Source: Tubulanus polymorphus (Eukaryota; Animalia; Nemertea). From it: a stretch of DNA of 64,000 nucleotides. Where the stretch lies: NCBI RefSeq assembly GCF_964204645.1, contig NC_134033.1:10052655-10116654 (forward strand). The letters run 5' to 3'. The position numbers and the translations under genes are program-made. Below the pieces are notes generated by a model. That model was not told where the DNA came from. It ran no database searches and was given only the letters and a program-made list of their open reading frames with translations. Below, one piece after another: positions 16,488-43,674 of the stretch; positions within the stretch are counted from its first letter, which is position 1; each line of letters starts with the position of its first letter.

Positions 16488-16656
<169 letters not shown>

Positions 16657-17770: not shown

Positions 17771-17860
17771 ATGGTCGACGGCCCTAAACGCAGACGCGAC
17801 GCCGTCAGGTCAAGGTCACCGTCGAAAGATGAAAGTGTTACTGCGAGAAAAAAGCAACAG
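17771..17860 (+). CDS. Giant plectin-repeat-tailed protein, candidate coding exon 1
   Basis: MVDGPKRRRDAVRSRSPSKDESVTARKKQQ then donor CAG/GTAGGA, phase 0, matching the acceptor phase at 20726. The ORF stays open upstream to 17510, so the start is uncertain. Confidence 0.55.
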
Positions 17861-20099
17861 GTAGGAGGAATTCTGTTTGTGGTAGCTGTATAGATATGTA
17901 GTATTTAGACAAGACGAATTCCATCACGGAATGAAAAACAAAGATAGCCGTCATTCTTGTTACCCATAATGTATTCAAGATAGAAAATCAAAGGTTACAT
18001 ACAGCCCGATGAGCCAAGCTACGACGTATAATTTCCTAACCCATTCCGATTGCTTATAGCTAGCGATATCGACGACCACTATTGACCCCAATTCTGACAG
18101 AATAGAAATACAAGCCACCGCCACATCATTACTATATAAGATACACTACAGCGAAACCCATAAAAACATAGTTAATTTTGGATCTATATCTAATATGAAA
18201 AGCCATATTTAACCATATAGTGACAACGTCTCAGCGCTAGAAAAGGAATCTATTCAAGGAATCTGTTGTGAAGAAATCAAAAGAAACTTGTTCTATGGTT
18301 TTCTCCTTCTTAAAGGCGTAGGAAATATTAGGAAGTAAAAAGTGTTGAAAATCTGGGTCATTCCACCAACAAGTCACTTTTTTGTAAAGTTCTATGTCCA
18401 CGTTTTCATTGTAACGGAAACTGACAAATACTGCAAAGTTTTGTCGCAGACAGAATCGAGGAAATTGCTCCTTCTCTGGGTGCAGAGTACGCAACAACGA
18501 GAGGCAGGAGGACTACACGGGGTAACTGTGACAACACCTCGGGCATCATTTCCTTCACAACAAGCAAATCATCAAATACAAAAATTCTCAGGTCCAATAA
18601 ATTAAAGCAGGTAGAAAATAATTTCATCAATGATGAATGTTACATTTGTTCAGTTTTTGTATAGTATTTTATGACATGCGGTTTTGAATTTCAAAAAACT
18701 CTCGTATCATCTACGTTCGTTTCCTTAGACATTTTGGGCACTTGTTGATGATTCTGTATAAAAAATCGTTTAATGAAAATCAGTGACAAATAAAACGCAG
18801 GAATCATTGTTCTGGGTTACCCGCACGCAAAATACTCGTGGGTAAAGTGAGGAAAGACTTGTTCATAGTAAATGAAAAAAGAATTGTATTTGTCACTCCA
18901 TCTATCTAGTCATGGTCGCCTGCCAACTCGTTGTACTATACGCATGTATTGTATATGTGTTTTATTAATTGTACGTGGTAGCCCGCTAACACAGTTTACC
19001 ATGTGTCACCCGAGCATTAAATATGTGAACAGCCTTTAATGTATTTATACAGTGACAGTTATGAAACTGAACTGTATTCACTATTCTGAAGTCTATGAAA
19101 ATCGCATAGAATGAGATCCATTAGCAATATAGTTTAAAGATTTAAAACAGTTTTCCTGACTGATAAAATCTCATCTTTAATTTTGGCTTCGGTATCGGTT
19201 ATAGGGCGTTCAACTATCTATATTATTGCGACTTTGTCAAATGATGTACCCTGTAAATCGTGGTGTGAAAAGTGTCTAAATTCATGCCCTAGTGGCCCAT
19301 ATCCTGTCTTATCTGACCTCGTTACCAACCCATACTCACAACCCATACTTACAGAACACTCCACTCTCACACATACATACTAATTTTTTCTTAGTCTCAT
19401 CTACGAGCAATTTTTGCTCGTAGGTCTCATCGAGGTCAATTCAGTAGTCTTGAAGACAAATTCTAATCTTGTCGAAATCTAGCCAATCAAAAGAGCCATC
19501 TTGGTCTGTGTTGGTGAAGTCTGCCATATATCAAAAACATGTAATATTTTCATTATGAACATAAATTATCTATGATATTCATAAAAATAGTACTAAAATC
19601 GATATATAAAATCACCATTAAAAAATTTATCGTATCTACGTATTACATATGTTGATATTCAAAATATATCAGGAATCGATATTTTTATAGTATTATATAT
19701 AGCATATTTTATTAAGAGCGCAGCTGATCTTTTATTGAATCGATATTTACACTATTTCAAGTGTTTCCTACAACTCCACTATTCTATACATTTTTTACAT
19801 GTATTACAGATTGAGTTGAATTGAAAAGGATTTTCTCGCCTGATATTTGAGATACTCGCCTGGTTTTTAATCACGTGTGGTTTTGGATCAGTAAGCATAA
19901 AGACAGTACTTAGAAGATTAACCAGATTCATATGAAGAGCGAGCTTTTGTTTGGATTTAATAATATGAGAAAATGAATTGTTACAAAGATAAGATGAAAA
20001 TAGCTCATTCTGCTGGCTCTACCTAAGTAATGTCGGAACTGTTCAATTCAGGGATAACCGTTCAACTTTGATGTGTCTGAATCTATGAATTAGGTATAC

Positions 20100-20123
20100 C
20101 ATGGACGTATAACTACGTCCATG
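20100..20123. mobile_element. 24-bp hairpin micro-element (CAT..ATG ends, 7-bp TSD)
   Basis: CATGGACGTA-TAAC-TACGTCCATG flanked by GGTATAC at 20093-20099 and 20124-20130. Confidence 0.65.
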
Positions 20124-20725
20124 GGTATACACACCATCCTCTCAACCCGTACATCGCTCGGGCAAGTTTCCGTAGTCTAAATAAGATAAACCAACTCTCA
20201 TATCGCTCTCCAATTCGGTTAACTTAGTAGTGACTTGAGTAGGGTTGACTGTTATAAAAATGTATCTGTCTCATAAATGGAATCAGTAATAACCCCGTGA
20301 CAAGGCCACCGTGATGATTAGTACAATTACTACGAGTTCACTAGCCTCTCTCCCTCTCTCTCCCTCTCTAATCTCTCCCCCATCTCTCTCTCTCCTGTGA
20401 AGTTTGAGAGAGCATATGGCATAGAGAACCTTTCAAATTTATCGGATATCAAACTGCGTGCGTCTAGTCTAAAGTAGACACGGCATAGAACCCGGATTGA
20501 GGTCAACAACGGTCCTCGTGATGTCATCTACTGCTGCTGTCGACAATTCGACTATATACATACATATTAATATGTTTTTGCGATGACTAATAACGCGATA
20601 ACTGTGATAACTAGATGAGCAATGTTTCTTTCGAATATCTATATCATATTCAGTTCACGGTTTAGTTCCACAATATACAAAAAGTTAGAATTAATGAAAT
20701 TTAATAAATTTTCATTTTTTTTCAG

Positions 20726-23171
20726 AGAACGCGGAAGCGGGCCTGGTGGGCTTGCTGGTACAGTTTGTTGTGGGGATGGACGCAGTTCATCAAACCGCTA
20801 TTCAATTACACTCCGAAAGACGATAACCAACCGGAAACAAGTGATATATCGAAACGTAAAAAACGTCGACGCAACCGGAAATCATTGCTCGGCTTTGACC
20901 TTGTCGATGCGGTTGAAATAGTACCAAGTTACGTGGTTCGCGGAAACGAAATTAGTGGCGAAATTCGGACTTTGAACATTAAAAATGTTACAAATGCTGA
21001 AAGTTTGGCTGAGCTACCGGGTCGAATCTCACCGGAGCTGTCCTTACCGGGACAGTCTCAATGGGTTCACAGACCGTCAGAGCTGTCCGCACGGGTGCAG
21101 TCTCCACGGGTTCACTCCCCATCGGAGCCGTCTCCACCGGTGCGTTCTGCGAAGGAGTCGAAAGTCGATATCAAAACAGTCGATCGTTTAATCGAAGTTT
21201 CGAGCGATTTATTGAAACATCGTCGGTTTATAGATGGCACTCATGTCGCACAAACGGAATTGAAATACGATGACGTCATAAAAGAAAATAGGTCATCGAG
21301 TAAAAGCGATGTTGATGACGTGTCCGCTGAAACGACGACCTCAACTCAATTCCATTCAATTAGCGCTGCAAAAATCGGTAAAACCGTCACGACTTCACCG
21401 AGACTTCCGGTTCCACTCCCTAGACAACCGAAATCAAATACCGCGATGACGTCAGCACATCCATCAACCACCAACAACAGCGGCGGGAAAAAGAAAAAAA
21501 CTAAAAAGAAGAAATCTGTTTCTGAACCGTCGAGTGAAAATATAAAACCGGAAGTCACTAGCAATATAGAGAAACCGGAAATTGCATCGGATGTTCCGCC
21601 ATGTTGGGATCTAGATGAGTCTCCACAGTTGAATAGTGATCTCACTCAACCGCTGTTTGTCTCTTCGTTACCGAGTGACCTTCACCCGATGACAGACGGT
21701 GGACACTCGTGTATACTGAAGAGTACGATCTCACCGCTCTACAACCGCCATATTACACTTAATGCTGCTGTATTACTTAATCCTGCTGCTCAAACTGGGT
21801 TAAATATTAATCCTGACCAACAGCTCAATATAGAACATGCTGATAGATACCCGCGTAAAGGCCATCTCAATTACAACCAATCAACGCATTCTACCTCAAA
21901 TTCAAACGATAATTCCCGACTTCAGAAGTTCGTCTCTGAATCGGGGAATGGCTTGAGGTCAATTCCGACCCTGGATATCGACGCCAATTGGAAGGATGAC
22001 GTCATGAGGGGAATTAGTGACGTATCACCACCTATCGTCGACTATGCGAAGATAGTTGTCGATTCGGCGGAGCCGCTTCCTAAGCGGTCTACTCCTACCG
22101 GCGGTAAAATTAGTCTAGTTTCGAAACTAGCTCGACTTGAGGGTGTGGATATTCGGGATAGGAGGACAATACAAAAACCGACAACACTTGCAGATTACAT
22201 GGTGCCCGAGGTATCGGACCACCGCGGTCGGGAAAAATCCCCTAGAAATAGGCGGGGTAGGAGCCTTGAGCTGGATGGAGCAGAGAGATACCAGTGTCCA
22301 AGTGATCAGTCCAGTGTCCCAGTTGATAATAGTACTAACTCAACCTGTCAGTTACAAGATGACATAATGAATCACGATAAAGCTGGACCTGGTAATAACT
22401 TGCCGAGTCAGGAAAGCGCTTCGTTCACTAGATCTTACAATAAACAGGTTAAAAACGAATACTTGAATGCTAAAACGCGTGAAGTTCATGTCTCACTGAT
22501 GGCGGCTGGAATTACGGCCATTCCTCAGAGAAGTCAGGATGATCACATCTTACAATCACAATCACAATCACGATTAGAATGTAAAATAGTTGATTATGTG
22601 GATGGGTCTGACGTCCACAGTAAACACAATTTCAATCACAGCGAATACAAGGCAGTTGAAAAACCTGAATGGGAAGAGTGCTCTAATCAAGACATTAAGG
22701 GGATTCGTAGTGGCGAACCGAGTTCAAAAAACATTCCGGAATTTGAATTAGCTCAAGCTGTCAGCGGTACAAATAACACGATAGAGAAATATAGGGCAAA
22801 TACAGCAGAGAATATAGACAATATACAACAACCCGGACGTGATAGGGACATTCAGGATGATACGAGTTTAGCAGGCCCTATACACAGGACTGGTAGCGTG
22901 TCTAGGGATGTATTCAGTCCAGCTCGTGCCCAGGGATCTCACGAACGTAACTTTTGGACAATAGGAGCGAGTCGTGTCCATCAGACACCGTCACCCCGGG
23001 CGGTAGTACGACTCGGAGAACAAGCCAAGGATACTCGGCATAAGGGTAAAAATGACGCTCCTTCTACTGTGGATAATGTGACCTGTCGCAACACGGCAAC
23101 CTGGGCAAATTGGAAAACGAGAATTAACAAGTCGGTGAAGGGAGTTCAAGTAGAACAAGAGCCTAAACGAG
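20726..23171 (+). CDS. Giant protein, coding exon 2 (2.4 kb; Trp-rich hydrophobic segment then disordered region)
   Basis: Strong acceptor tttttttcAG at 20724-20725 in frame with the 817-aa ORF. Donor CGAG/GTAGGT at 23172, phase 1, matches the next acceptor. Confidence 0.8.
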
Positions 23172-23460
23172 GTAGGTGTAGAAATCTATTCAAACATTCC
23201 GTGGACTGTCAAGTGTAAATATAGGCGCTTGACTCTATGTAGATAAATATCTTCAAAACCTTTATCAAGCCACAATTACCATCCCCTCCCACTCTTCACA
23301 CACACATTGATGACGTCACCGCTGCATTCCAGAAAAGAATCTATTAGGCAATAATGAAACCATTAACTCTTTATTGTAGAGTTAATTATTTTGTTGTTGG
23401 AACAGATTAAATCAGAGAAAGGCGTTAATGAATTACATATGGCACTGATTAACTCATGTA

Positions 23461-23480
23461 CAGCGCCACCTGCTGGTTGG
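23461..23480 (-). promoter_or_regulatory. CTCF-like motif
   Basis: Reverse complement CCAACCAGCAGGTGGCGCTG is close to the CTCF core consensus CCAGCAGGTGGCGC. Confidence 0.45.
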
Positions 23481-24821
23481 CAGTTCACTTACCTTTCTCT
23501 GTCCCAGCAATGTTTCTTGTGTGTTCAGCTTTATTCAAATCACTGGTTTTAAAGTCTAGACTTGCGCATGAACTGACTCGTATATATTTTTTAGAAGTTG
23601 AGTTTTTAAGATTATTTAAGTCGCATTTTTATATATTTTTCATACTTGTTTTTCATATGTTAACATGTTTCTCATATCTATTTTTAAACTGCTTTTGATC
23701 CGGTTTCGCAGATGTATAGCAGTTAAATATCTGTGACGTGAGTTTGAATATTGAAAACAAAAATTACAAAACAAAATTATGAATTAGAATTAAATGATTC
23801 ACCTGATTTTTTCCTAATTAATTCATCAACTATATCAATCAGTTTTGCATTATTTTTCACCCAATAATTTCAATGATTCATCACCTATCGCAATTGACTT
23901 TCATTAATTCATCGATCATCTCAATCATTTTTGTGTTGTGTCGTTTGGTAAAACACGAATTTCTGGCGCCATCTTATTCTATTCTGATCGAGTATTAAGA
24001 TAAACACAGTTAAAATGTTTGCATGGCGCCTCGTTAAAAAAACCTAATCGAATTAGGTTTCCAAGTCTCAGAATAAAAAGTATCAGATTCTTATCTACAA
24101 AAACAATATTCGATTAGTCTTAATCAGTTATCGTCAATGCCAATAATTTGGGTGTGATAAGGCCCGGGGTTGGGATATAACAATGCTGAAATATTGCATT
24201 CGATTCGATTCAACTAGAATGAAATATAAACGAACAAATGCCACCCACAACTTAGTAACTCGTGAATCGTTATTAGGTATATTAATCGGCCTGCTATATC
24301 ATCCGGCTATTCTGGCGAATACTCTGTATGAGTGTGCGTTTATGTCTGCAAGTATGTACTTTAATAAAGTGTACTGGTGTGCGTCTTGGAGAAAACAAAT
24401 TCTAATACCCTCTCGTCGCACATCTCTTTAAAAGTAGCCTCTTGACGAGTCTCCTTGACATGAATGATAGGAACGACAAACTGATATCAATGACAAAAAC
24501 ACCGTGGAGCACTTGAGAAGTAAAATATGTTTATATACAGTACATGCATGCATACGATGCATAAAACAATTTTCCCAGTTTTAATCGGGGGTTCATTTCA
24601 CATTGTGCGCAGAAGGATTTTTAAATGTCGAAGTTTAGGATTATAGAAACGAAGCAGGTATTTCATTCAAAAAAGCTTTATAAAGAGCATCTGTTCTAAG
24701 GTATCCGATAAAAAATATAATTTATTTGCTGTGGTGCGAAAAAGCTGTAAGTGAAATGATTTGGGGGAAATGCATTTTGCAAAACAGTTTGCACAATAGA
24801 TGTCAAGACTGGATTTCAGAA

Positions 24822-25045
24822 GATGTAGGGCCTTTACTAATGCCTGGAGCAAGCCCACATATCAAATCATAGGTATAGGAGCCAGCCCACCACAGAGGTA
24901 GAGGGCCTGTGCCAGAAGCAAGCCCGCATGTAGGGCCTGTACCAGGAGCAAGCCGAACGAGATGTAGGGCCAATGCGGAAGCCAGGCGCAGACCCTTAGA
25001 TTCAGGGCACGTGCCAAGAGCAATCGGATATAGGGCCGATACCGG
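24822..25045. repeat. Degenerate ~30-35 bp tandem repeat
   Basis: Recurring gatgtagggcctgt..caggagcaagccc units. Confidence 0.6.
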
Positions 25046-26668
25046 TGGCTGTAAGGGAAATAGTTAAGGTTATTACATATTACAATATGAAAACAAAAAA
25101 TGAGAATGATAATAATATCTGCTCTACTTCCTTAGTTGCATCAATCACGTTTTCATACCAGGCACTCCATACTGCATACTGAATAAATGTGCCTATTGCT
25201 TTTTTAAAAAACGTTTTTCTGTAAATAACATCTCCAGTCAGCCATCAATTGTACAACTGTTGTTGCTGCTTTTGTCTGAATAGGATTTTTATTCCTGTCT
25301 ATAGTTTTATGGCTCATCGTATCGAGAAGAGCTTTAAGATTCTTTACTACGAGAATCTGGAATTGAAGATTCTATCCCGATCGATTGTCAGTTGACTCGC
25401 TAACATCAATCCCTCTCAAATGATTCTTGATTTATGTCACTGCCGTGAATCTAATATTGCCGCCGCTAGCTCGTGCCAAGACAAACAAAAACCTTATATC
25501 CTCAGTGGTGTAATGTGTGCACTCTATTGATACAAAAATTAACTCAGTTACTGTAGGTCAATAATAGAACCGTCTTTTAAACAGGTTCATAGCATTTTCA
25601 AGGGCTGCACGGGATATCATTCTACCAATTAAGGAAAACTTGTGGCAAAATATAAAGTTGGGGATGAAAATAGAGCATAACAAAAGTTAGAAATATGGGG
25701 TTGTTTGGCTATTTCTACAAAAAGAAACATCCCTAAACCTGTGTGGACACGATCCAGCGACCTCTAGCATGTTTGCCGAGCATGGTAACCAATAGAATAT
25801 AAACTGGTTGCGATTAAAGGCGTTTGCAAGTTCGTCTGGCCAGTGTGGTGACCGGTGACCAGTCAGGTGTAGTTCGTTAACGGTACCCGCTGTAATTCTC
25901 TGTTGATTACGACAGTTTCTAGTCGGAACCATTTGTCAAGAATTCTTATCCGGTCAATTCTTCCACCGATAGAAGTAAAATTTAGAGAAACTTTAAACGT
26001 AACAATTAGAAATATATATGTATAGTACCGTATTTCACAAACAACGATTCTTAATGGTCTATCTACTAAGTCCTTATTTGGTTTTTCAATTAATGCATAA
26101 TCTACTGACATATTACAATGCAGTCCTGTTGAACAAGGATATATAGGGCTGTATAAGGCCTGGGACAGGCCTACTCATGAAATTCATGTCCAACGATTTG
26201 CAATTCAACAATGCATGTAAATGACATGGTTTTACCATGGTAACGTTGTATATAGCAGCAACTGATGTATGTATACTTTGACTCAATGACTCCTCTATAA
26301 TTCAAGCAACGATGCCGGGTAAAATCAATATGCAGCCCACGTTTGGACAGACCTTCCAATTAGTTCCACGAAAGAAGCCGAATTCTTCGTAGCTTCGGAA
26401 ACATTTGGTTCACAAAGCAATGAATTCAATCATCTAGCTTTAATTTCTCGGCACCCTGGATACACAGAGTTCCACAGTTTGAATTACGATTTAACTCTAT
26501 AGAATTAATTAATTCATTTGTTACTGAAAATGAACTGATTCAATTTTATATCAAGTCAAATATTCACCGAAATTTATAGAAGTAGATCTTAATCCAAATC
26601 CATATTTACGCCTTACTTACATCTTTGGTTGAAACTTTGAAACTCATTTTTCTCATGATTAAAAACCG

Positions 26669-27090
26669 AGAACTATGGAATTGGGTCATGAATTGTAGAA
26701 TTGGGTCCAGAGTTTAACTTCGTCCTGAGTGATGGACCAGGTTCCTGAACTGTGGAACTGGATCCAAAACAGTACTGTGGAACTGGGCCCAGAACTGGGA
26801 ACCAGGGTCATGAACTGTGGAACCTGATCCAGAACAGTACTGTGGAACTGGGTCCCAAACTGAGGAACTGGATCCAGAACCGCGGAAACTAGGGACATAG
26901 CTGGTCCTGAACAACACTTATATTTGGGCCCAGAACGGTGGAACTGGGACCGGAATATGGAACTGGATCTAAAACTATGGAACTAGGTCCAGAACTGTAG
27001 AACTGGGCCCCGATCTGTGGAACTGGATCCAGATGTGGAACTACTTCCGGATGATGAAACTAGATCTCGAACTGTGGAACTGGATCCAGT
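26669..27090 (-). repeat. Degenerate 20-21 bp minisatellite (gaactgtggaactggatcca)
   Basis: About 19 units; reverse complement of the 15709-15992 family. Confidence 0.8.
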
Positions 27091-27451
27091 GTGAAATTGA
27101 GCCCTTCAGCTGGCTCTCGAGTTATAAGTGCAGTGAATTTAGTATTGAACAAGCCCTTCACGATGAAACCAGGCCTAGCTATCATTGTCTTCCTCCAGGT
27201 CCAGATATTTGAGAGCATCATATATTTTGTTATTACGTGATGCAGTAGGAAACTGATCAGACTCAAATGATACGTTGTATTATTGTTAACATATTCTTTT
27301 ATGTGGGAACGAATAACTAATCATATTTGCATACGCTAACATTAACAGCAGTGATATGATATATACATATAAAAATGAAATTACTATTCTCTGTTGTGTA
27401 TGAATCGTCATATGAGATTCGTGTTACGCGGAATTCTCTATTCTCTTTCAG

Positions 27452-30400
27452 AAACCGACAGTATACTCAAGACCGACGAACAATTACTGAAATGTGATCG
27501 TAGTTCTACGGGAACCGCCGATACAGGGGAGGTTTACGGAGCAGTCGACAACAATACAGACCAGAAAAATGCGGTTGCGGACGATCCGTTCAAACAGACA
27601 TCTGTTGCAACCGATCCTGGGACACCAGCACAAACAGCGCCTACGATCATCGATAGCGGAGTAGAAGTAACGGAATTTTCATCAGCAAAGCCTCGCTATA
27701 TAAAATATGACACTGGAGACTTTTCCGATAAAACAAACCTGCAGACAACAACATATACAAGTGATACTCGTATACAGCAGCGGCATATAAATAGAGAGAA
27801 GGATTGTGAAACTGTTCATTCGACTCCGGTGGACGGTGCTACTACTGCTGAAGGCAGGCTGTCCCCTTATAAAAATAGTCAGCCAGGAGATTTATGTGAA
27901 GCACCTGGAACAGGCCTCTCCTCGTCACCGGCAGCCTGTATAAAAAGGAAACATCCGAGCGAGGAGTTTTCTAGCGAAGCGGATTGCAGATATCACCTGT
28001 CGAGTGGTCGAAACAAGTGTAACAGAAAGGGTGAAGGAGGACAGGAGACTCGAGTCGTCGAGACGGTGAGTCTGACTAGCGGCGAACAGAAGCAGCAGCA
28101 ACAATTGTTTGAAGATTCACAACAGCGGCAAAAATATTATAGCGATACTAAACGACGACAAGAACCCGAGCCCGGAGAATCTGATCGCGTCCCTGGTAGA
28201 AATCGGAGAAAAACTACAAGGAAAAATAATCTAAATGTCACCGACGCCGGAGAGAATGCGAAGTTAGAAAACAGTGAGGCAATAAACGAGGATACTCGCG
28301 GCTCGATCGATTACAGGGGACCGGCGGTTGAAACGGCTAATGTTCATGTCAATAGTAGATCTATGGAAGAACAACACCTAGATCAGTGGCGGAGAATTAA
28401 AGATATTTCTATTGAAAATCAAAGTCTTGAATACGATGATTTCCTAGAGAATTATCATCAAAATAACCCGGATAATTTGAATACTAGCCCTGTTGCATAT
28501 TCATCATCGAAACAACCCATACTCGATCCTAACTATAGCGTCGATACTAACTATAGTTTCTTTTTGGACGGTTCGAATTCGTCGCTTGATTTCACTGCGA
28601 GAGACGAGGAACTACAGAAACTGTTCGATACGTGTACGCCTAACTCGATCAGTACAGACTCACTGAACGAACACGCTTCTAAATATAGAACGACGGCCAC
28701 CGTTTTATCCGATATCGAAAATTGCGAGATGGAATATAAACACGATCCAAACGATGATGATTCGGTCGGGGTTGTAGATTCGGGAGATATCAATAAAACT
28801 GTGGATCCCACTGTAACCGGTGGAGATGATGACTCAGACGTGTCTCAGCATTATAAAGTGAAATTCACCGATGACGAACATTTTACTTTAACAATCACGA
28901 AAACTGTCGAGAAAACCTCGCCGAAAAAAGAACATAAACGGGCTGCGAAGCGGATCAGGCTTCGGCGGTGGATCGAGTGCCCGAGGTGTCTCGACAGTAG
29001 GACTGCCGTCTCTGGAAGTAGTGATTCTGATTTTCAGCCTGATCAAGAAGATGCATTGTGGATCACGGAAGGAAGGCGCGCATCTAAAACGTGCGTGCAT
29101 TTACGCGACGGGGAACAGTTAACACCTGCGCAGATGCAATACGTAGATGATATTACTGAGTATATGAAAGGCAATAACGATGAATCAATGGACGAGTTGA
29201 GGTTGAATTCAGTGTCTCGTGAGGCGAGTGTCGACCCGGATGGGAGGTTGAGATTTAACGGATCGGTGTCCAGAGACCCGAGCGTCGAGCCGGATAACGA
29301 TGACGTTCAGGTTAACCCGAATTACAGACGCTTCAAATACGTTCACAGTTTGGACCAAACGAGTATTAATTCTAGCGATGAAATGCAAAGTAGGACCGAA
29401 TCGGTCAATTCATACTATATGAGCGAGGACGGAGAACTGTACCCGGTTCAGGAAGCTGTAGGCGAGCAGGTCTATCCACCTTATACAACACAAGCTCAGC
29501 TCGAGTTAGAAAAACAATATGAAATTGATAGTGATGATACGTGGGAGCAATGCTGGCCTGGAATACAACGACAAATACACGGCTCAACAGGCTCGTTACA
29601 TTCGAGATCAACTCAATATCAGATTTACGAATATCGAAATGTTCACAAGTCGCAGACTTACGACTTTACCGAGTACAGAGGTAGTAATATCGAATATGAT
29701 TTACACGGACATACGATCCCCGATCGTAGTTCAACGGATAGACTTCCTGTACAGGATAACTGGGACGATTTCGAACGCGTTTTGTTTCCCGATGGTCGCC
29801 GCGCCTCGCGAGCTGTCAACTCGCTTCCAGAATCGGTCGCCCGTCGCGGTAGCACGTACATCGTACAACACGAACCAGCAGCTACAACTGCATCGGACGC
29901 CAGCGCTACCGCAGCAGCAGCTTTACAGCTGCCGTGTGCTGCCTCGGAAAACGATAGCAGTTCTCAAAGTGAATCGCACAGTGAGAATGTGGATAGAACG
30001 TACGATAAAACTGATAGCAGAACAAACGAATTACAACAAGCCACTAAACAACTTCAGTGTATTCTCGATAATAGACAGTTATTACCGGTAGTTAATTATA
30101 AGCCAGGAGTAACTACAGACGATCAGGTTACATCTTCAGCAGTCGCCGATACCGCGGTGGTGGTGACAGATGAATTGCGTGTGTGCGCTGATCGAGTCAG
30201 GAGAAACCGGCGACGATTAGATGAAAGCGAAACGTCAAATACAGCAACGAGCGCCGTACGACTTCAGCAGCACGAGGCTCCGCTCAAGTCTGACGACAGT
30301 CCAGCGCTTAAAAACAATTCATCCGAGGCTCTACTACAAAAACAACTCGAATCGGATGAATTATTTACATCGGCAGAGCTTTCAACGACTACAACAACAG

Positions 30401-33400
30401 CAACAAAATTGCCACAATCGGATAACGACGAGACTATATTCGCAAAAAGCTCTACACAGATATCTGAAGCCGATTATGACGCTTCCATACATTTAAATGT
30501 GACATCGCCGCGAAAAGACATCCTGTTAACAGCGTCGAGTCGTTCATCCGCTAATAAACTACACTCTAATGGTGACGAGGATGCGAGTAAAATTGATAAA
30601 TCATCTTCTGATACTGGGATAAATAACGATACAGGAATAACAGCTGAACACAGCGGACTCGACACGATTCAACCACTGACTGAAACAACTATCGATGAAT
30701 TAATAGATTACGGACAACAGGACGTGAGCAGTGACGATCCGAGTGTAGTTAAACAGTTATTTATTGCCAGTGGTGGAGATCTTACTACGCGAGAAGTCGC
30801 TGCAGCTGCTACTACTGCTGCGGCTACTGCTAGTGCTCATCCTGTTGAACTGATTACGAACGATAAATCTTTAGAATGGCCTCGTAAAAATCAAACCAGT
30901 TGCAGCGCCGATAGTCAGAACGATATAACATTGGATTCTGACCGGCTAAACGATACAGGAGCAAGAACAGCAGGAACAGATCATAAGGTTTTACAGGATA
31001 CAATTGAATTTATAGTTCATTCACAGGACTCTGAGAACGATATCAAACTTCCCGGTGATGTAGATTATAGCGATTCGTTGGGATTTACTATCAGTGCAAA
31101 TTTTGAACAGGGAATAAAGGATGAAACGGAGCCAGTACTCATTACTGGTGACAGTGAGATTAAACTAGAAAAAGGACGACGACATAAGAGAAAAGCTAAA
31201 GGTAAGAAGACTTCAACTTCACTGAAAAATGTTGATTCTCCATCGACCGAAACTGCACGATTTAATATAAATGAATTGGAAACTGAGAGAATTGAAGATA
31301 GACCGTTTCAGGGCGAAACAGAAGAATCTGTTATCAGTGATACTACTCATAAACCTGAATACGATAAGTCGACATTGAAGTCAGAGAATGACATAATTGA
31401 GGAGACCATGCCCATTTATGTATCTCCTGAACACCTCGATCAGGGTCAAACGGGGTCTCATGTTCTAATCACTGGTCAAATATTAGATCCAAAAAATACT
31501 GACGTCAAAACAGACGGTGAAAATTTGAAATCGACAAAAAAGAAAAAAAATAAGAAGAAAAAGGTCATAGTGTCTCAAATTACTGGATCTTCTCAAGACC
31601 CTGAAGTGCCAAAAGATACCGGAAGACTTCCAGATACTGGAGAACGACGAGAACATGGAGCACGACGAGATCCTGGAGTACCACGAGCAACTGAAGGACT
31701 GCGAGATAATGAAGGAATTCCTCTAGACAGCAAAGTTTTGCCGCAAGAAGACTCAAATATGTCAACGACTGAAATCAAACCTGAGAACATTTACAGTTCT
31801 TCATACGGCATTGAAATCCGACTCGTGGACGATTCATTATCAAGTGAAATATCACCAAATGATAAGAATGTTTCCCCCGAGAAAGCAATAAACAAAGAGC
31901 GACCAGAAACTGATGTATGGAAGGAAAGTGCCACAAAACCAATATCAGATACTGAAAACATGCCACGACAGATTACAATATTACACCGCAGGGAGTTAGA
32001 TTCAACTGTAACTTGTAAGATGAGTTCGGATGAAGATCATCTTTCCGATGTGGATCAATCCCCCGATGTCTCAATGACCTCGTCGAATCTGAAAGCTCAG
32101 GTCGCGTCGTATAGTCAGGTGGATACTTCGGACCAATTATTATCCAGCTCAACCGAAGTTGCCTTGAAAATGGATCCGAACATAACGACTGTAAATCAGA
32201 CCCAGTCATCTGAAATGAATATGCCGACTTCTAGAGAGGAGACTGAGGAGATAACTGACAGACCTGATAATAACTCGATCGAAGTTTGTCCACAATCGAA
32301 CATTTTAGATTCAAGCAAATCTATGCAAACTCTTTCAAGTAAGACTACATTAACTATAGAACAAACAGGTACAAAAACCACAGGTGTTCGATCAGAAGGA
32401 ACACCTCAGCAACCACAGCTAGACGCAGAAGTAAAGACTGAACAAACAATTAACTTGGAACGATCTGAAACATTAATGAGTGACAAACCGATGATGGTTA
32501 CCAGTGAAAAACGGAGGGGTAAAAAGAAAAAGGCTAAAAAGCACCACCAGTTACGAAATGATGACAGTATTGATAAATCTATAGTTACAGTTGATCCAAC
32601 AGGTTTTCATATAGAGCACGCTTCTGCAGATGAAAAGAGTCAACATGAGAATGAAACTGGATTTACACAAGAACGATCTACATATCCATCAGAAATCGCT
32701 AATCAAGATATTACCGATATTGGATCTAGACAGGGACGACTGGTGGCAGTGCCATCAAGAGTTACAGTTGAAGTAACTGATATATCTCTTGTATCAGTAA
32801 TAGAAGCAATAGCAACAGAGGAGGAACTTGTGAGCGTACCATTCGGAGTAACAGATGATGTCATCGATGTTTCTCCTGAATCAGTAGCAGCACAGGAAAA
32901 AAGGGCTTACTCACAAACTGACATAGATTCACCCGAGGTAAATGTTAAGAGTGCGTCAGAAGAATTCAATCCGGTGAAGAACGAAATGCCAATATTACAC
33001 AATATAATTATGCTTTGTCAGAATGATGATTTGGCAGCGCCTGATAAATATCTTCAGGAAGACGAGAAAGAAAACCCTGCAGCCAATGAAGATAACTTTG
33101 TAGATGTGACTGAAACTGAACACTTAGTTAGAACAGATTCTAACCTAGACATGAATAAAACCATAGCACAATGTGATAATAACTCTCACCCTGAGGATAC
33201 CGATGATAAACCTCAGAATGGTACGCGCCCGACTTCTTCAGTCGATCGAGGATTTGCATTAGTTACTGTGTCAATGAGCCAAGCATTTACACTTCCTAAA
33301 CAGGTTCAGACTATAACATCCAGTGATGATGTTAAAACTATGTTCAAATCTTCAAATGGTAAAAGAGAACACGAAATTCCGGGTTCAAGGTCGCAAAATG

Positions 33401-36400
33401 AATCATTTGAGGCTGATAGGGAAGATAACATCCAACTAGATGGAATACAGATGGACCATAGAGATAAACATAAGACAGATTTCGAGAATGCAAACGTATC
33501 TGTTGAAATGGTAGAATCATCCTTAGAGAATGTTGAACAGGAAGCAGACGGTATTGAAACGGCTGTTAGGACGAAAAGCCCCGAGGTGGGAGAATCTTCT
33601 ATCGAGTACCAGGATAAGTTTACGTCTCCTGCGCATGAACCCTCAATTGAATATACACAGATTGTAAGTACAACTGATCAGATCAACGCATTGAACCTAC
33701 AGACGAGTAAAGAATCAGTCGGAATGTATGATAGCTTATACCATGATTCCAGATCTGATGAATCCAAGGCTCCGGCGGATCAACCTGCCTTCGATCCACA
33801 CGCTGTAATCGATCAAACGATCATTTTCAAGGACATGCCAACAACTGTTGAAGTCACTGTGACGTCTGATGATGTAGTTCAAGACCTGAAACCCACACAT
33901 CATGTGTCTCTAGACACTACAGATGCACCATCCGGGACGTATGATACGGATAGAGACCAGCCAGTGACACCTGACGAGCAGCCAAAACCCATAGAACATC
34001 TACCTACAAATAAGGAAAATGAATCAGTCGTGTCTACTGAAGATAGTTCGCTAGAATATCTCCATCCTGGGCAAACCACAATATCAGATGGAAAAAATAG
34101 TGATACCAGGCCTGATGAATCCAAGGCTGAAGTCGATCAAATTTATATGTCTATGGATCCATCTACATGTAATGAGTTATCCATGACATCTGAATATTTT
34201 GTAGGTAAAAAACCACCGCCTTTACCTAAGGCTAATAAGAAAAAGAGGCGGAAAAGAAAGAAGTCGAAGACAGATTCCAATAGTCTATCGGAGGATGGAT
34301 CCACCACCACGCCTCAAATTGCCACAGGCATTGATCATAATACATTTGAAAATCTGTCACCAATTTCAAGTGGAATCTCTGCATCAGTGGAACTAACATC
34401 CACTAAAACTATTGGCGATATGACTACCACATATACTGGAGAAATAAAAATTCAACCAACTGTAGATGTTGCAATCGATGATGCAGAACTTAAAACTGTA
34501 AGTGATAATTCAGATGAGTCTCCTGTTCAGAAGGATACGTACGAAGGTATTGACTGTACATCAACTACGGATATTGATAAGATTAAAGATGGCGGCATTA
34601 TTGACAAACCAGATGATTTCTCTGATTCAGCAAAACCATTGGATAATCTAGGGAATTTTGACGATATCTCAAGAGGCACTAGTGTTACACATCAGCCAGG
34701 TGATCCAGCGATATCCGATGATCAGTCGAATCCGCCGGAATATGTATCTACAGACAAGGAAGGTGCAGCAGTGATGTCTACTGAAAATAACAAACTATAC
34801 TATCTCCCTCCGGAGCAAGCTCTCGAATCAGTTGGAATGTATGATAACTTGGATAGTGATTCCAGATCTGATGAATCTAAGCCTCCGGCAGATCAACCGG
34901 CTTTCGATCCAAACACAGTAATCGATCAAACGACTATTTCAATTGGTACGCCAACTGTTGAGGTCACGTCTGATGATGTAGTTCAAGACTTGAGACCCAA
35001 AAAACATGTGTCTCTAGACGCGCCATCAGGGACTTATTTTGGAGAAAATACGGATAGAGACCAGCCAGTGACACCTGGCGAGCAGCCAAAACCTATAGAA
35101 TATCTATATACAGACAATGAAAATGTAGCAGTTATGTCTACTGTAGATGGTACACTAGAATATCTTCATTCTGAGCAAACCACCACATCAGATGAAATAA
35201 ACAGATACACCAGGCCAGATGAAGCCAAGGCTGAAGTCAACCAAGCCGATTTGTCTATAGACCCGTCTACAAATAATGAGTTCCCCATGGCATCTGAATA
35301 TTTTGTAGGTAAAGAACCACCGTCTTTACCCAAGTCTGATAAGAAAAAAAGGCGAAAAGAAAAGAAGTCGAAGAAAGAATCCAATACTCTACCGGAGGAT
35401 GGAACCACCACCACGCCTCGAAACCAAAACATATCTATCGATGATCACGGGAAGACTGATGCATGCATCGATGCCAAGGGTATTGTAATAGCTGACACCA
35501 AGCATGACAGTGAATCTAATCCTCAACAGGTTGACAAATTTGAAAAGACAGAGCAAGTAAAAGAGATTTCTACATTACATTCGCCTAGAGTTATCAGAAC
35601 AGATACTTCATCGATTGAGAAAATAAAGACTTCAATTGAATTAACTAGCTCTACCGAAACAACAGCTACAACTTCAAAAAATATTTCCTTGTCGGAAATG
35701 GAACCCGATAAAGAGGCATTGACTGATAGACGCATCGAGAATATATTTATCGATTCTATCGATAGCAATTCAATTGTCACGAATATTTATAATGAAACAG
35801 TTACAATTATTGGTATGATGGATAATGGGGCCCCCGTAGAAGTTGGAGATAAGCTGAAGGCACCAACTATAAGTGCCTTGCTATTAGACACATTACCCCC
35901 TGATGGACCGAAAGATGATAGTTGTGTTGGAGATCAAAGTAGTGAAGGCACTTTCCATTGGGTCTGTGATAAGACTAGGAGAGGTACGGATGACGAGGAA
36001 AAACAAGTGCCTCCTATCCCTGTACCTCTGGATTATACTGATGATATCAATGTTACAATTGACCGGACTGAAAGACGTATAGTAACGACTATATTGGATC
36101 AGTTAGTAATTACCACTGGCACTAAGATATCCCGTACGAGTGCAGAGCTTGAATCAGAAATAGGAGTAGAGCGAGGTGAATCCTGGCTAGAGATGGATGG
36201 CAGAGCTTTAATTCATTTCCCTTGTGAATCTGAACCTGGTGAACTAGTCGCAGCCAGCGAAGATACAGTGGAAGATGTTGAAATCAGAAATGTACAGAAC
36301 AAACCAGTTGATAGCAGAGAAGACGATGGTAAAGTAGCTTCGGGAGATGATCCAAGTGACACCAAAGACGTACCAGGACAAATACCTGACGAGTCACCAA

Positions 36401-39400
36401 CTGAATTCACTGATAGCGATGTAATAAAATTCAGACAAATTGAAACTGGAAAAATCTTGGTTACATATAGTTATTCTATAATAACTACCGGGACCAGAAT
36501 AATCTATAGCGACGTCACTGTGAACAATGAGATTTGCGCTGAGAGGGGTGAATATTTTATTGAAGCTGATGCTAGACCATCGATTCAATTCAGTGAAGAA
36601 CCTAACATGATTGAGATAGACGAGGAAACTCTCGGTGAACCAGAAATAATTGCAAAGGTAGCATCGAATCTGAATTTGACTGAAAAAACTACTGTGGTTG
36701 GAACTAATGACGCAAGTCTCCGAGAACCAGATGAAGAGAAAGGAAATGTTATAGACAATGAGCCTTTCTTATCCACACATGCTGAAATAAACCCGGGAAC
36801 AATAGCTCGAGAAATAGCTGTAGTCAAACCTGACGATCAAGCTCTCGAAGCGCCTTTATTGACGAAGAAGAAAAGGAAACAGAAGAGACAAGAGAGACAA
36901 AAGTCTCACAGAACACCGAATAGTAAACCAAATGAGGGTAAATACATTCCACACTCGAAAAACGACTGCGATCCGGGTTTATCAACTGAACAACCGAAAC
37001 AGCCTACTGAGGATGTACCACAACCTACTGAAGGTGTATCGCAACCCACTGAAGATGTATCACAGCCTACTAAGGATCGACCACAACCTACTGGAGATGT
37101 ATCACAACCTACTGAAGATGTACCACTCTTTACCGAAGATGTACCACAACCTGCTGAGGATATATTACAACCTACCGAAGAAGAATCTCAAAATACTGAT
37201 GATGTATCGCATCCTACTGAAGATGCATCAAAACCTAATGAAGATGTGTTAGAACTTAATGAAGATGCACAAAAACCTACGGTGGATGTATCGAAGCCCA
37301 CTGAAGATATATCACAACCTACTGAAGATGTATCACTACCTACTGAAGATATATTACAGCCTACTGAAGGTGTATCACAACCCATTGAAGATATATCACA
37401 ACCTACTGAAGATATATTACAACCTACTGAGGATGTACCACAACCCGCTGAAGATGTACCACTACATACTGAAGATATATTACAGCCTATGGGAGATGTA
37501 GCACTACCAAATGAAGATGTATCACAACCTAATGAAGATATATCACAACCTACAGAGGATGTTCCACAACCTACTGAATATCTATCACAACCCAATGAAG
37601 ATGTATCGCACCCCAATGAAGATGTTTTACAACATAATGAAGATATATCTCAACCTACTGGAGATGTATCGCAATCTACTGAAGATATTTCACAATCCAC
37701 TGAAAATGTATCAAAATCTACTGAAAATGTCCAACTGGGCAAGAAATCGAAAAAGAAGAAGCGAAAATCACATGGAAAAAAAGGAAAGCCTCTGAAGCCG
37801 ATGGATTCAAGTGGGGTCAGACCAGAGGAAAAATCATCAGCTGATGACCCCCAACCAATAGCAAATACATTAGACATCATTACAAAGATTTCCAGCTTCT
37901 CCCATAACGTAGACCTGGCAGCTCAGGAAGGAATAAACAGAGAACCTGAGGGGTTGAGTATATCAGCAATATCTACTGAACCAGATAGAGTGCATCAATC
38001 TGGATTAAAACATTTTACAGACGAAGCTGGTAGAACGCTACAGCAAGCTGTGGACAATATTTCACTTGATTACTTGACGTCGACTGGTACACAGCAGTTT
38101 ATTTCGAGTACGGTTTCATATTCAGCCACTATTGAAAGCCAGAATGTGCTGGAGTCTCCGGTTGATGGTGTCAAAGATACTAAAATATCAATCAGCGACA
38201 GTCTGGCTGAATTTGATGACCAAGACGGAGGTGATCCTGAGAGCAGAGATTACTCGAACCTAATACCTAATAAAACGTCTACTACCTATGTTGACTGCAC
38301 GGACACAAGAACAATCATGTTTCCATCGGACTACCTCGTTTTCATTCCTGGGACAATTGTGTCATACAAGGAGGTCGTTAACGACTCACACGCTGACACT
38401 GAAAGAGGTGAGACGTGTTTAATATTCGATGGGCGGCCATTGATCGATTCCACCGAACGATCAGGCACCCTGGCAGCCAGAAGTGACGTGGATGCGAGGC
38501 ATAACTTTCCAACACAGTCAGACACTACTTTAGCAGACAGGGAAGATGTGGATGAGGGACGGGACACTCGAACAAAACAAAATGTGGATAAAATTCCAGT
38601 TGATACTAAGATATCACAGCAGTTTGTTCCAAGTACACTTTCATATTCAGCTTCAATTGAAGGCGCGAATGTACTAGAGGCTCCGGACGACGAGGCCAAA
38701 GATGCGCACACATCCACCAGCGCAATTGTGGTTGATGTTGTTGCTTTAGATCAAGGGGGAGATCATAGAGCAATGACCAAAGGTTCTGCTGTTGTTAAGC
38801 TAGACGCAGGAGACCCTGAGATCAAACATAACTTAACGCACAAACCCGATAAAGTTTCTACAGTTGATGGTGACCTTACAGACACAAGACCGATTCGAAT
38901 TCTATCCGATTGTCTCGTTATCAATACTGGGACGTGTATTTCATTCAAGGAAGCGGTAATTGACTCGAAGGTTGACAGTGAACGGGGTGAGTCGTGGATT
39001 AAAGTTACTGGACGACATTTCATTAATTCTAGCAATCAATCAGACATAGCTGTGTCAGACAGGGACTTAGAAAAAAGACAGGACATTCCGACTCAACCAA
39101 ACACTACTGTAGCTGCCACGGGTGATATGAAAGAGGGACAGGACATTCGGACTGAACTAACAGAGGTCAAAACCAATATACCAGAGACAATGGTTAATCA
39201 TCCCGAGGAGGTTTACCCGACAGAAACCGTGCTATATATGGCTACAGAAGACGGAGGAGTGAAGGAGCCCAGTAAAGAGTCTCCGTCGACCAAACCTGAA
39301 CAAGGAAGAAAGACGAAAAAAGGAAGAAAACACGAGAAGTCTCAACCTCGGGAGAAACCAGATGATTCAGGAGATAAACGCAAATCTTCTACTGACAGAG

Positions 39401-42400
39401 TTGATACATTTAGTGAAGTACCGATGATGTCAACTAAGGAGGATACTTCTTCCAAACACGGTGAGAAATCTAGGAAAAAGACAAAATCCAGAAAAGGTAA
39501 GAAGAATGAACCTGCAACGAGCTGCGTAGAAGTAACTTCAATGGGACCAGACTCAATAACTATAGTGGCCTCGACAGTTTTTACAAACCTATCAGAGGAA
39601 CTCGAGCAGCAGCAGCTGACTAGTGACGACTATCAATCAACTACTGGATATCAAAAGGACAGTGATCTACAAGTGAATAAGCGTGATCGAACAACCGATA
39701 AATCAGCTACATCAACAATTGGCGATACTCAGATTGGAGACCGAGATCAGACATCACGGGATCAAACTATTGATAAGTCAAGTGAACTAACACCTGAAGA
39801 CACTCGCACTGATGACCGAGACCGGACCTACCCGGATCAAACTACGGATGAATCGACTGAACTAACTTCTGAAGAAAATCAGACTGACCATCGAGACCAG
39901 ACCTCACGGGATCAAATAACTTATAGATCAACTGAACTAACACTTAAAGACACTCGGACTGAAGACCGAGACCAGACCTCTCCTGACCAAACTACTGATA
40001 AATCAACTAAACTAACACCTGAAGACACTCAGATTGAAGACCAAGACCAGACCTCACGGGATCAAACTACTGATAAATCGATTGAACTAACACCTGGAGA
40101 CACTCAGACTGAAAACCGGGAACAGACCTCACGGGATCAAACTACTGATAAATCGATTAAAACAACACCTGGAGACACTCAGACGGAAGACCGGGACCAG
40201 ACCTCACGTGATCAAACTACTGATAAACCGATTAAACTAACACCTGAAGACACTCAGACTGAAGACCAATACCAGACCTCACGGGATCAAACTACTGATA
40301 AATCGATTGAACTAACACCTGGAGACACTCAGACTGAAAACCGGGAACAGACCTCACGGGATCAAACTACTGATAAATCGATTAAAACAACACCTGGAGA
40401 CACTCAGACGGAAGACCGGGACCAGACCTCACGTGATCAAACTACTGATAAACCGATTAAACTAACACCTGAAGACACTCAGACTGAAGACCAATACCAG
40501 ACCTCACGGGATCAAACTACTGATAAATCGATTGAACTAACACCTGGAGACACTCAGACTGAAGACCGGGAACAGACCTCACGGGATCAAACTACTGATA
40601 AATCGATAAAACTAACACGTGGAGACACTCAGACTGAAGACCGGGACCAGACCTATCCGGATCAAACTACTAAAATATCAATTGTCTTAACACCTGAAGA
40701 CACTCAGACTGAAGATCGAGATCAGACCTCACGTGATCAAACTACTGATAAATCAACTGAACTAACACCTGAAGACATTCAGACTGACGATCGAGACCAG
40801 ACCTCACGGGATCAAATAACTTATAGATCAACTGAACTAGCACTTAAAGACACTCGGACTGAATACCGAGACCAGACCTCTCCTGACCAAACTACTGATA
40901 AATCAACTAAACTAAGACCTGAAGACACTCAGACTGAAGACCAAGACCAGACCTCACGGGATCAAACTACTGATAAATCGATTGAACTAACACCTGGAGA
41001 CACTCAGACTGAAGACCGGGACCAGACCTCACGGGATCAAACCACTGATAAATCGATTGAACTAACACCTGGAGACACTCAGACTGGAGACCGGGACCAG
41101 ACCTATCCGGATCAAACTACTAAAATATCTATTGTCTTAACACCTGAAGACACTCAGACTGAAGATCGAGATCAGACCTCACGTGATCAAACTAGTGATA
41201 AATCAATTAAACTAACACCTGGAGACACTCAGACTGAAGATCGAGACCAGACCTCACGGGATCAAACTACTGATAAATCAACTGAACTAACACCTAAAGA
41301 GACTGACACTGGTAACACGAATGAATATGCTGTCAATATTGAATATCTGGGTGATAATAATTCAGTAATTATCGCACCAATCCTCACCGATGATTCATCA
41401 TTAATTACAGGTGTGATAAACGATAAGAAATATACTACATTAGAAGACGGAAATCAGATGGAAGACTCAAGCGGAGATTGTGAAATGGTATCTCCGCCTG
41501 ACGTGCTGGACCAACCCGACGATGATACATTAGCCAGCGGTGAAGTTCATTCAGAGAGTTGTGTAGTGCGGGAGAATGCGCACCATGGAGTCGCCAACTC
41601 TGAAATAGTGTGCCTGGTTAATGACCCCGAGGTTGTTCCTCGGAATGTGTCATCTAAAGGTAACGACATTAATTCAGTAACCAGTGAAGAAGGCTTTACG
41701 GAGGTGCAAGAAGTCTGGGAGAATACACAACCTAGTGATAGAAACCCTGGGACTGTATCTGAAGACAAGGACTCGGAGTCAGAGCCTCAGAAAGAGGACT
41801 TTACCGAGGCAAGTGAAGCCAGCCCGGCAGACAAGGATCCTGAGCCAATAAATCAGGATATACCGGGTAAGGACAGTATCGGCCAAATGACTAGCGAGAT
41901 TAGTTTGACAGATGTGAGTAAAGAATTGAACAATCGACCACCAAATTACCCTGAATCAGTAAATCTAGAAATACCAGGTAAAGTTGATGACGACGATAAT
42001 GTAACCAGCGAAGGAGGTTTTATGAAAACATTAGGGGTTTGGGAAAATGAAAACAAACAACCCGCAGAGAAAAACGTTAAAGGTGAGACCGGACCTGACA
42101 CTGACACTGGACCTCAAACTGAAACTGGTCCTGAAACTGAGACCGGACCTCGCCCTACTAGGAGAATTCGATTCGATGATGAACTGATTACTAGCGAAGC
42201 TGGTTTCTACGAGACTCGTCACGTGTTAGTGAGGAAACCTGTTGATGAGGAGGTGAGTGACGAGGAGACTGATGAACTAGACCCAGCAGCAGCTCGTGAA
42301 CTGTGGGAGAAACGCAGGCACGAGTTACTAAAAGCTAGCGATGCGGTAAGACAGAAGGGCGACGCGTTTTCTACTCGGCGGATGAAAACTAAAAGTGAAG

Positions 42401-43674
42401 GTTATGATGAAACTCGTGAACGCGAATACTGGATCCGAACTGAAATCTGGAGTAATCCGGATATGAGTGAAAACGATAAACTAGAAGCGATGAGACGCAT
42501 AAGTTTGAGCGGTCGATTTCTAGATACCGATGAATGGTCTCGTGTTAGTGAAATGAGAAGCCCCGATCCGTTTAAATCGGATGTAACGTCGTTTGACCAG
42601 GCGATTGCTGAGCGTAACACCGGCACGTTCAGATGTGTGCCGCGGGACGAAGACGCGGCAGCGGCGGGTAGTGGCGTGCATGATCAGTCGGTGGAGGAGT
42701 ACGGCGGAGGTGAGATGGACGACGAAGAACGCCGCAAACTAGAGGAATATTACCGCGTATCGAGTGGCTTCAGTTCCCGGGGTCGAGGTACATATAAATC
42801 TAACGTCAGGCGACATAGTCTGGCTACTGTGGAGAAATGGACCATGTCTTTAGACGGATCGATGCATCGAAATTATGCCGTTAATGCGTTAAACGGAATT
42901 TCAGCTATCAACCCGGGACAGTTCAACATCGCGCAACAAAGTACATTTTACGACGATAGCGATAGTGATGATGATTTGGCGGATATCGGACTCGCCGCTC
43001 CAAAATCTAACCGACGACCGAGTCGTTCTTTAGAAGAATGGTGTCATTCGCTTCAGAGACGATTATCCCTGGCCGCTATCGGGGGTAAGCGTATGGAGCG
43101 TGATGTGGTCGCCGGGGGTGGGCGTAGACGCTGGTCTATGGTGGCTAAAGGTGCTCACACTGGCGTGCCCTCGCGACGCATGTCGGATATACCCGATATA
43201 CAGTACGGCGCTAGCGAGGAAGATGAGACTAAACTAACCGGTGATGAGTACGAAAGTGATACCGGTGAAACTAAAATCTTCAGTGATTTCTATCAGGATC
43301 AGAAACAGATTCAACTAGCTACGTTAACGGCAGGTTCGGCCCTGGATGCGGCTCGAGCTGAGCAGGAGTCCGAGCAGGAGTCCGGGTCAGCAGCCGCGGA
43401 TGAGTCCGAAGAGGGGTGGACGTCGACCGAAACCGAATACTACAGCGTGATGGAAGTCGAACAGAAGTTCGTAATAAGCGGTGTAGTAGATCCTCGCGTG
43501 CCAGCGGGTGAACCAAACGATATAATCTCGCTGGATAAAGCTCGTGAGGAAAATATAGTCTGTTGCGATCGCGGTGTTTATATGAATCCGTTAGATGGCA
43601 GCACGATTCCGCTACTGGAAGCGATGAACGAAGGTCTCATTCACGTTGACGTCGTTTACGAAAACCAATCATAG
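27452..43674 (+). CDS. Giant protein, 16.2-kb terminal coding exon; acidic low-complexity repeats with C-terminal plectin/plakin-type repeats
   Basis: Uninterrupted ORF of over 5,400 codons. Acceptor ttctctttcAG at 27450-27451, phase 1. C-terminus ISGVVDPR..IISLDKAREENIV...GVYMNPLDGSTIPLLEAMNEGLI fits the plectin-repeat pattern. Confidence 0.88.
36995..37731 (+). repeat. Coding 21-bp (7-aa, QPTEDVS) tandem repeat
   Basis: About 35 in-frame caacctactgaagatgtatca units. Confidence 0.92.
39700..41300 (+). repeat. Coding 75-bp (25-aa, TPEDTQTEDRDQTSRDQTTDKSIEL) tandem repeat
   Basis: About 21 in-frame units with 225-bp higher-order duplication. Confidence 0.95.

Follow-up and report, generated by a model that had tools for sequence, protein, structure and literature searches.

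The window examined here is a 64,000-nucleotide (nt) stretch of the genome of the palaeonemertean Tubulanus polymorphus (NCBI RefSeq assembly GCF_964204645.1, contig NC_134033.1, positions 10,052,655 to 10,116,654), in which a forward-strand gene is predicted to encode a protein of about 6,250 amino acids (aa) with a lone pair of plakin repeats at its C-terminal end. Judged from its sequence, the locus holds a genuine protein-coding gene that is present in one copy and restricted to its lineage, and nearly all of its coding sequence lies within one 16.2-kb exon. Our analysis reproduced the three-exon model of the original prediction to the base, in coordinates, phases and length. Exon 1 (17771-17860) opens with an ATG at 17771, contributes 30 codons of basic character and ends in the phase 0 donor CAG/GTAGGA (slashes mark exon boundaries). 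Exon 2 (20726-23171; 815 codons) is entered through a strong, pyrimidine-rich acceptor, ttttttttcag/AG, and left through the phase 1 donor GAG/GTAGGT, and exon 3 (27452-43674) follows the strong acceptor tctctttcag/AA with 16,223 nt of unbroken coding sequence, including the TAG stop. On inspection, the splice sites have canonical sequences and compatible phases, and the join gives 18,759 nt and 6,252 aa with a single terminal stop; the exon junctions and the start codon are predicted. The exons were joined only for length, composition and motif counts, and all searches and folds were made exon by exon. The underlying stop-to-stop open frames on the forward strand span 17504-17890 (129 codons), 20708-23215 (836 codons) and 27379-43671 (5,431 codons). 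Because the mean open frame across the six frames of the window is only 17 codons (the next longest after the two long frames has 610), the 836- and 5,431-codon frames are not chance occurrences.

Codon usage agrees with this model. Using a codon table trained on the publicly annotated part of the gene (35287-43671), we obtained positive in-frame log-odds for all three exons: +0.22 for exon 1 (-0.05 and -0.52 out of frame), +0.07 for exon 2 (-0.49 and -0.74) and +0.25 for the unannotated 5' half of exon 3 (27454-35286; -0.53 and -0.89). Introns and flanks scored about -0.6, with all frames alike. The 25 open codons that precede the acceptor at 27452 are non-coding-like (-0.62), which favours that acceptor over a start at ATG 27400. 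A single-exon gene beginning at ATG 27400 or 27412 is less likely for this reason, and also because exon 2 would then need another downstream partner or would end 44 nt past a strong donor. Exon 2 occurs only once in the T. polymorphus genome and has no in-frame ATG in its first ~240 codons, and therefore needs an upstream exon. Where translation begins within that exon is less clear-cut. The frame is open for 89 codons upstream of ATG 17771, and a candidate N-terminal extension of 87 codons (17510-17770, forward strand, in the same open frame as exon 1) starts with an ATG that has A at -3, versus T for the ATG at 17771. Its translation would depend on where transcription starts, and its codon score (-0.28) is ambiguous.

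The public record covers less than half of this frame. A 2,795-aa protein in NCBI and UniRef (P0002) is 100% identical to the translation from 35287 to 43671 and starts at an internal ATG of exon 3, with 2,636 open codons lying upstream in frame. Word searches, which cover candidates of 0.55-1.75 times the query length, recovered no longer protein with the C-terminal region (candidates of 2,990-9,500 aa), no recorded protein for the 5' half of exon 3 and no database relative of exon 2 (candidates of 460-1,463 aa). As these searches gave no longer or upstream protein, truncation is the simplest reading, and the 2,795-aa model is most likely a truncated version of the same gene. The protein had been put forward as undescribed, which holds for its upstream part, found in no recorded protein, but not for the 2,795 codons at its 3' end, which are already on record. 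Alternatively, the functional product could be the 2,795-aa protein itself, with the upstream 2,636 codons and exons 1 and 2 belonging to another transcript or isoform or forming a decaying remnant. This protein is the only one on record, the word searches with exon 2 and the 5' half of exon 3 were blank, and an annotated 801-aa isoform of a paralogous locus (described below) skips a whole 7,733-codon frame, suggesting that giant exons in this family may be optional. Against it, no stop interrupts the 2,636 upstream codons, in which a remnant would have gathered stops; their codon usage fits that of the annotated part; and an internal duplication (33712-34317 and 34825-35421, forward strand; two ~200-aa copies, 69% identical), which lies mostly upstream of ATG 35287, has a ratio of nonsynonymous to synonymous substitution rates (dN/dS) of 0.48. 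Automated pipelines also commonly truncate very long repetitive exons. We therefore regard a 2,795-aa product as improbable. Taking the full frame as the gene, public annotation apparently leaves over half of its 19 kb of coding sequence unrecorded, and it also omits an open frame of 23 kb from a related gene; such giant exons are an annotation blind spot worth re-annotating.

The C-terminal end is the only part of the protein with recognizable relatives. The plakin-repeat pair occupies 43468-43653 on the forward strand (profile match 43426-43668) as a 62-aa core arranged as strand, repeat, repeat, strand. A HMMER search of the whole library returned 52 other matches, all on the last ~110 aa, many of them to repeat proteins with tens of pairs. 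In an alignment of 47 modules, the nearest are 41-45% identical to this one and themselves pass the cut-off of the Pfam Plectin family (PF00681), and several close modules belong to small proteins with SH3_10 and spectrin-repeat heads, here called mini-plakins. A leave-one-out profile built from the 46 other modules scored 72.4 bits at residues 5350-5430 of the exon-3 frame, compared with a maximum of 8.6 bits among 5,000 shuffles of the last 100 aa, and matched nowhere else in a six-frame translation of the window, as expected from the claim of a lone terminal module. Against the PDB, the plain sequence found desmoplakin first, though weakly (E 0.034), and the module-family profile found desmoplakin (4.5e-24), plectin (2.1e-16), envoplakin (4.4e-14) and the periplakin linker (1.6e-4). 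AlphaFold2 given the family alignment returned a mean predicted local distance difference test score (pLDDT) of 80.5, rising to ~90 at residues 50-90, with residues 30-100 ordered and a topology of long strand, repeat, repeat, long strand. At the level of sequence profiles, then, the last ~65 aa truly are a pair of plakin repeats. Nowhere does the window, which holds one pair with two motifs, contain a globule of 4.5 repeats, the form of a complete plakin repeat domain.

The remainder of the protein is a giant D/E/T/S-rich chain, as had been described. Exon 3 contains 10.8% D, 10.7% T, 10.2% S and 8.9% E, the whole 6,252-aa model has a net charge of -457, and this extremely acidic chain is most likely disordered. 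The earlier statement that calponin-homology (CH), plakin and spectrin domains are absent held up: Pfam found no domain in the three exons (6,396 open-frame codons, E <= 1), including CH, spectrin, SH3_10 and GAR/EF-hand domains. A search with the last 792 aa, which answers the proposed search for orthologues with the C-terminal part, found none, and no relative outside the plakin module, among 1.84 billion representative proteins (HMMER). The rest of the chain (~6,180 aa in all) had no detectable relatives in narrower searches. Exon 2, the ERGE unit described below and the region before the module have no paralogue in the T. polymorphus genome, and the 364 aa before the module gave no usable match in an ESM Atlas look-alike search.

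Internal repetition accounts for several segments of exon 3, all on the forward strand. Besides the duplication described above, four ~100-190-aa copies of a unit with an invariant ERGE motif lie at 35833-36705 and 38041-39156 (dN/dS 0.42 for the third versus the fourth), and AlphaFold2 of this unit was not confident (pLDDT 37.5, from an alignment of just four copies). A 21-nt tandem array of 35 copies at 36999-37730 encodes the heptad P-T-E-D-V-S-Q, and a 75-nt array of 21 copies at 39727-41311 encodes a 25-aa D/T/Q/R-rich unit with a mean dN/dS of 0.57. Across the internal duplicates, dN/dS ranges from 0.42 to 0.57, including copies upstream of the annotated start, and by this measure they are under moderate purifying selection. 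A further pattern, T-S-E-(E/G/A)-G-F followed a few residues on by V-W-E-N or H-V, occurs three times at 41900-42400 in exon 3, within the ~200 aa after the 25-aa array, and may represent a linear motif or a degenerate repeat.

Towards the N terminus, the Trp-rich segment noted earlier is present at 20741-20803 (forward strand), where five Trp residues fall within 13 aa of a hydrophobic segment with polybasic clusters on either side. Its basic-hydrophobic score is 1.03, a heuristic value only, and the segment at most resembles a basic-aromatic peripheral membrane motif. The composition of the chain could also suit a membrane-anchored or exported polyanion, such as a mucin-like or ion-binding part of a coat, tube or mucus, anchored or targeted by an N-terminal hydrophobic stretch and with extracellular Ser/Thr/Pro repeats. 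Ribbon worms are copious producers of mucus, 21% of the residues are Thr or Ser, the P-T-E-D-V-S-Q array runs to 35 copies, the polybasic patches may be taken to resemble proprotein-convertase sites, and translation from 17510 would add a ~25-aa hydrophobic stretch. That stretch, however, is broken by two Pro and two Glu residues, and the Trp-rich segment is not transmembrane-like by the Kyte-Doolittle scale. Neither start model shows an N-terminal signal peptide or signal-like h-region, although no dedicated predictor was applied. Cys accounts for only 0.8% of residues, Pfam found no extracellular domain in the three exons, and the marks of a mucin (a signal peptide or clear transmembrane anchor, with Cys-rich flanking domains) were not found in the model. 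Moreover, all known plakin repeats belong to cytoplasmic proteins. We accordingly rate an exported or membrane-anchored polyanion as highly improbable.

Basic residues stand out against the acidic background in two forms: polybasic patches (7 strict and ~16 looser) and an R-R-x-S cluster at 42493-43185 (forward strand), which places six motifs in ~230 aa just upstream of the plakin-repeat pair. Shuffles predict 0.41 motifs in this region, and the cluster holds 6/9 of the protein's R-R-x-S motifs. R-R-x-S is the consensus of basophilic kinases. In desmoplakin, a phospho-regulatory motif around S2849, near the repeat domains, controls filament binding (PMC4347645). Given this precedent and the position of the cluster beside the module, we propose that docking may be regulated. 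The same basic blocks would fit a nuclear or condensate polyampholyte scaffold, in which the ten or more K/R clusters serve as nuclear localization signals or sticky blocks and the plakin pair is inherited with a minor role. Condensate proteins typically show charge arranged in blocks; here, the polybasic patches punctuate a strongly negative chain, and they are missing from the giant exons of both paralogous loci. The good preservation of the module (72 bits) and the adjoining R-R-x-S cluster argue instead that the end-piece is used, and Pfam returned neither a nucleic-acid-binding domain nor any other nuclear one for the three exons. The protein is thus unlikely to be a nuclear or condensate scaffold.

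The gene is no one-off: in outline, two further loci on the chromosome piece that carries the window (C9) pair a giant acidic exon with a plakin-repeat cap. Cap-type modules occur at C9:15.38 Mb (P0031), C9:5.555 Mb, C9:12.603 Mb and C6:11.50 Mb, and giant plakin-repeat genes of the classical type lie at C2:23.14 Mb and C1:22.82 Mb. At C9:5.523-5.560 Mb, a giant frame of 7,733 codons with a net charge of -715 (5530581-5553779) is followed by a plakin-repeat cap. All of this frame falls within a 25-kb intron of P0030, an annotated mini-plakin of 801 aa encoded on the same strand, and it is probably a giant optional exon absent from public annotation. At C9:12.589-12.604 Mb, a T/E/G/D-rich frame of 3,682 codons with a net charge of -311 (12592099-12603144) is followed by a 284-aa open frame (C9:12603313-12604164) that opens with plakin-repeat pairs. 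Both loci carry a weak SH3_10 head upstream, which for the 3,682-codon locus lies at C9:12589209. Among the three giant exons, only that of the window contains polybasic and R-R-x-S clusters. Genes for intermediate-filament proteins are present in the T. polymorphus genome, at C5:21.89 Mb and C7:15.68 Mb.

The surroundings of the gene hold further features. On the left, an open frame on the reverse strand (322-1110) with a PTB/PID phosphotyrosine-interaction domain (E 6e-20) marks a neighbouring gene that bounds the locus. Upstream of exon 1, an RVT_1 reverse-transcriptase fragment (E 6e-26) followed by a 227-aa frame without a Pfam match (11807-13562, forward strand) is probably a retroelement relic, and a (TA)88 microsatellite occupies 16489-16663, ~1.1 kb before the exon. 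Exons 1 and 2 are flanked by two oppositely oriented arrays of a 20-nt minisatellite (15723-15992 and 26736-27087). We considered whether the arrays could be the ends of a mobile element and rejected this, as copies of the satellite are scattered across the genome (at least 159 matches on many chromosomes, frequently close to chromosome ends) and exon 2 is present only once. The locus is bounded on the right by a 601-aa ATG-started open frame without a convincing Pfam match (49036-50841, reverse strand) and by an ankyrin-repeat open frame (52051-52512, reverse strand; E 1.6e-16).

Taken together, we give a little less than an even chance to the explanation that we favour, in which the gene is a headless mini-plakin derivative that combines C-terminal docking, a flexible chain and N-terminal surface attachment. 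The C-terminal pair would dock the chain on cytoplasmic intermediate filaments or on another plakin-repeat ligand, and phosphorylation of the neighbouring R-R-x-S motifs could tune this docking, as in desmoplakin. The basic, aromatic N terminus, together with the polybasic patches, would hold the other end to an acidic surface, for example the inner face of a membrane, and the intervening chain would act as a long flexible spacer or spring. A bolder proposal, which we think doubtful, is that the ribbon worm has a cytolinker family of a new design, comprising at least three genes on one chromosome, each joining a mini-plakin end-piece of one repeat pair to a polyanionic, disordered chain of several thousand residues that a single giant exon encodes. 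The member in the window would have lost its head and gained a basic aromatic N terminus, polybasic patches and docking-gating kinase sites, and would work as a regulated megadalton entropic tether or ion-buffering spring between membrane and filaments.

Several observations weigh against the favoured explanation. The Pfam Plectin model misses the module even at E <= 10, whether the last 100 or the last 500 aa are searched, and a scan of the T. polymorphus genome with the same model did not list the module's site; the proposed check of the C terminus against PF00681 thus came out negative with the Pfam model itself and plakin-like with the family profile. Structural comparison of the predicted fold is weak: desmoplakin and envoplakin take the top three ranks in Foldseek, but at a non-significant E of 2-3, and VIA-align gives a Z of 2.6 with a root-mean-square deviation of 3.5 A over 51 residues. 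No mini-plakin head was found in the window by tblastn, and the nearest SH3_10-like match on the chromosome, itself weak, is ~0.93 Mb away, leaving no head within ~0.9 Mb. The giant exons of the three loci show no detectable sequence similarity to one another. The public start at 35287 could be a real internal start, and the junctions, the start codon and the full-length inclusion of exon 3 are predictions from genomic sequence. At the membrane end, the highest 19-aa Kyte-Doolittle window in the originally predicted model is 1.46, below the transmembrane level; the proposed membrane link therefore has no firm basis, with the Trp-rich segment peripheral at most. At the filament end, periplakin and envoplakin bind filaments through electropositive grooves (PMC7035337, PMC4782060), whereas the module core has a net charge of -7 (4 K/R versus 11 D/E, on composition only; invertebrate family mean -2.7), a composition that does not point to such a groove. 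In the fly, which lacks cytoplasmic intermediate filaments, the plakin repeats of Shot act at adherens junctions (PMC2173965). Given this precedent and the acidic core, filament binding is a hypothesis, drawn from homology, and not a safe default. A membrane-to-filament tether, as originally envisaged, is plausible as an inference but unsupported in detail.

That three loci of one genome combine a giant acidic chain with a lone repeat pair suggests that the pair is a portable docking unit that works independently of a head. This bears on the function of plakin repeats in invertebrates, where few of their ligands are known. No orthologues of the gene are known, and it should interest chiefly those who study giant or disordered proteins or the evolution of the cytoskeleton.

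Among known systems, AHNAK and the PEVK region of titin are analogies only: each has a very large single coding exon with low-complexity charged repeats and a presumed role as spacer or spring. They are vertebrate proteins with other end domains, and we found no sequence relationship. The two related C9 loci share the succession of a giant acidic frame and a plakin-repeat cap, but their caps sit on separate small exons and they retain weak SH3_10 heads. The mini-plakins ('envoplakin-like' XP_074658143, which is P0031, 366 aa; and P0030, P0044 and P0050, ~740-800 aa) have the closest repeat pairs, 30-41% identical to the module in the alignment and up to 46% locally. They share its motifs F-x-I-x-G-V-x-D-P and P-I-x-x-A-M-x-x-G-L-I, and the pair of P0031 also forms the C-terminal end; unlike the protein in the window, they have a spectrin-repeat/SH3_10 head of their own and are 8-17 times shorter. 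Invertebrate plakin-repeat-array proteins (P0001, P0009 and others, including the T. polymorphus gene at C2:23.14 Mb) are built from the same repeat-pair unit (25-40% identical), but pairs cover 38-71% of their length as against ~1% here; all long database matches are arrays of this kind, and none comes near that ~1%. The spectraplakins and classic plakins Shot, plectin, desmoplakin, dystonin and MACF1b (PMC2173965, PMC3352950) likewise have giant coding exons and homologous repeats, but they carry these repeats as arrays in 4.5-repeat globules and possess CH, plakin, spectrin and GAR domains. The periplakin linker (PDB 4Q28; PMC7035337) is also a lone two-motif module with long beta-strands at the extreme C terminus, and the AlphaFold2 topology of strand, repeat, repeat, strand agrees with its published description (PMC7035337). 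Periplakin differs in having a plakin domain, a coiled-coil rod and an electropositive vimentin-binding groove (PMC7035337), in place of which the protein in the window has neither head nor rod, a ~6,180-aa acidic chain and a module of net charge -7. The gene is best regarded as a variant of the spiralian mini-plakin family that has a giant exon and no head, with the periplakin linker as its nearest functional analogue.

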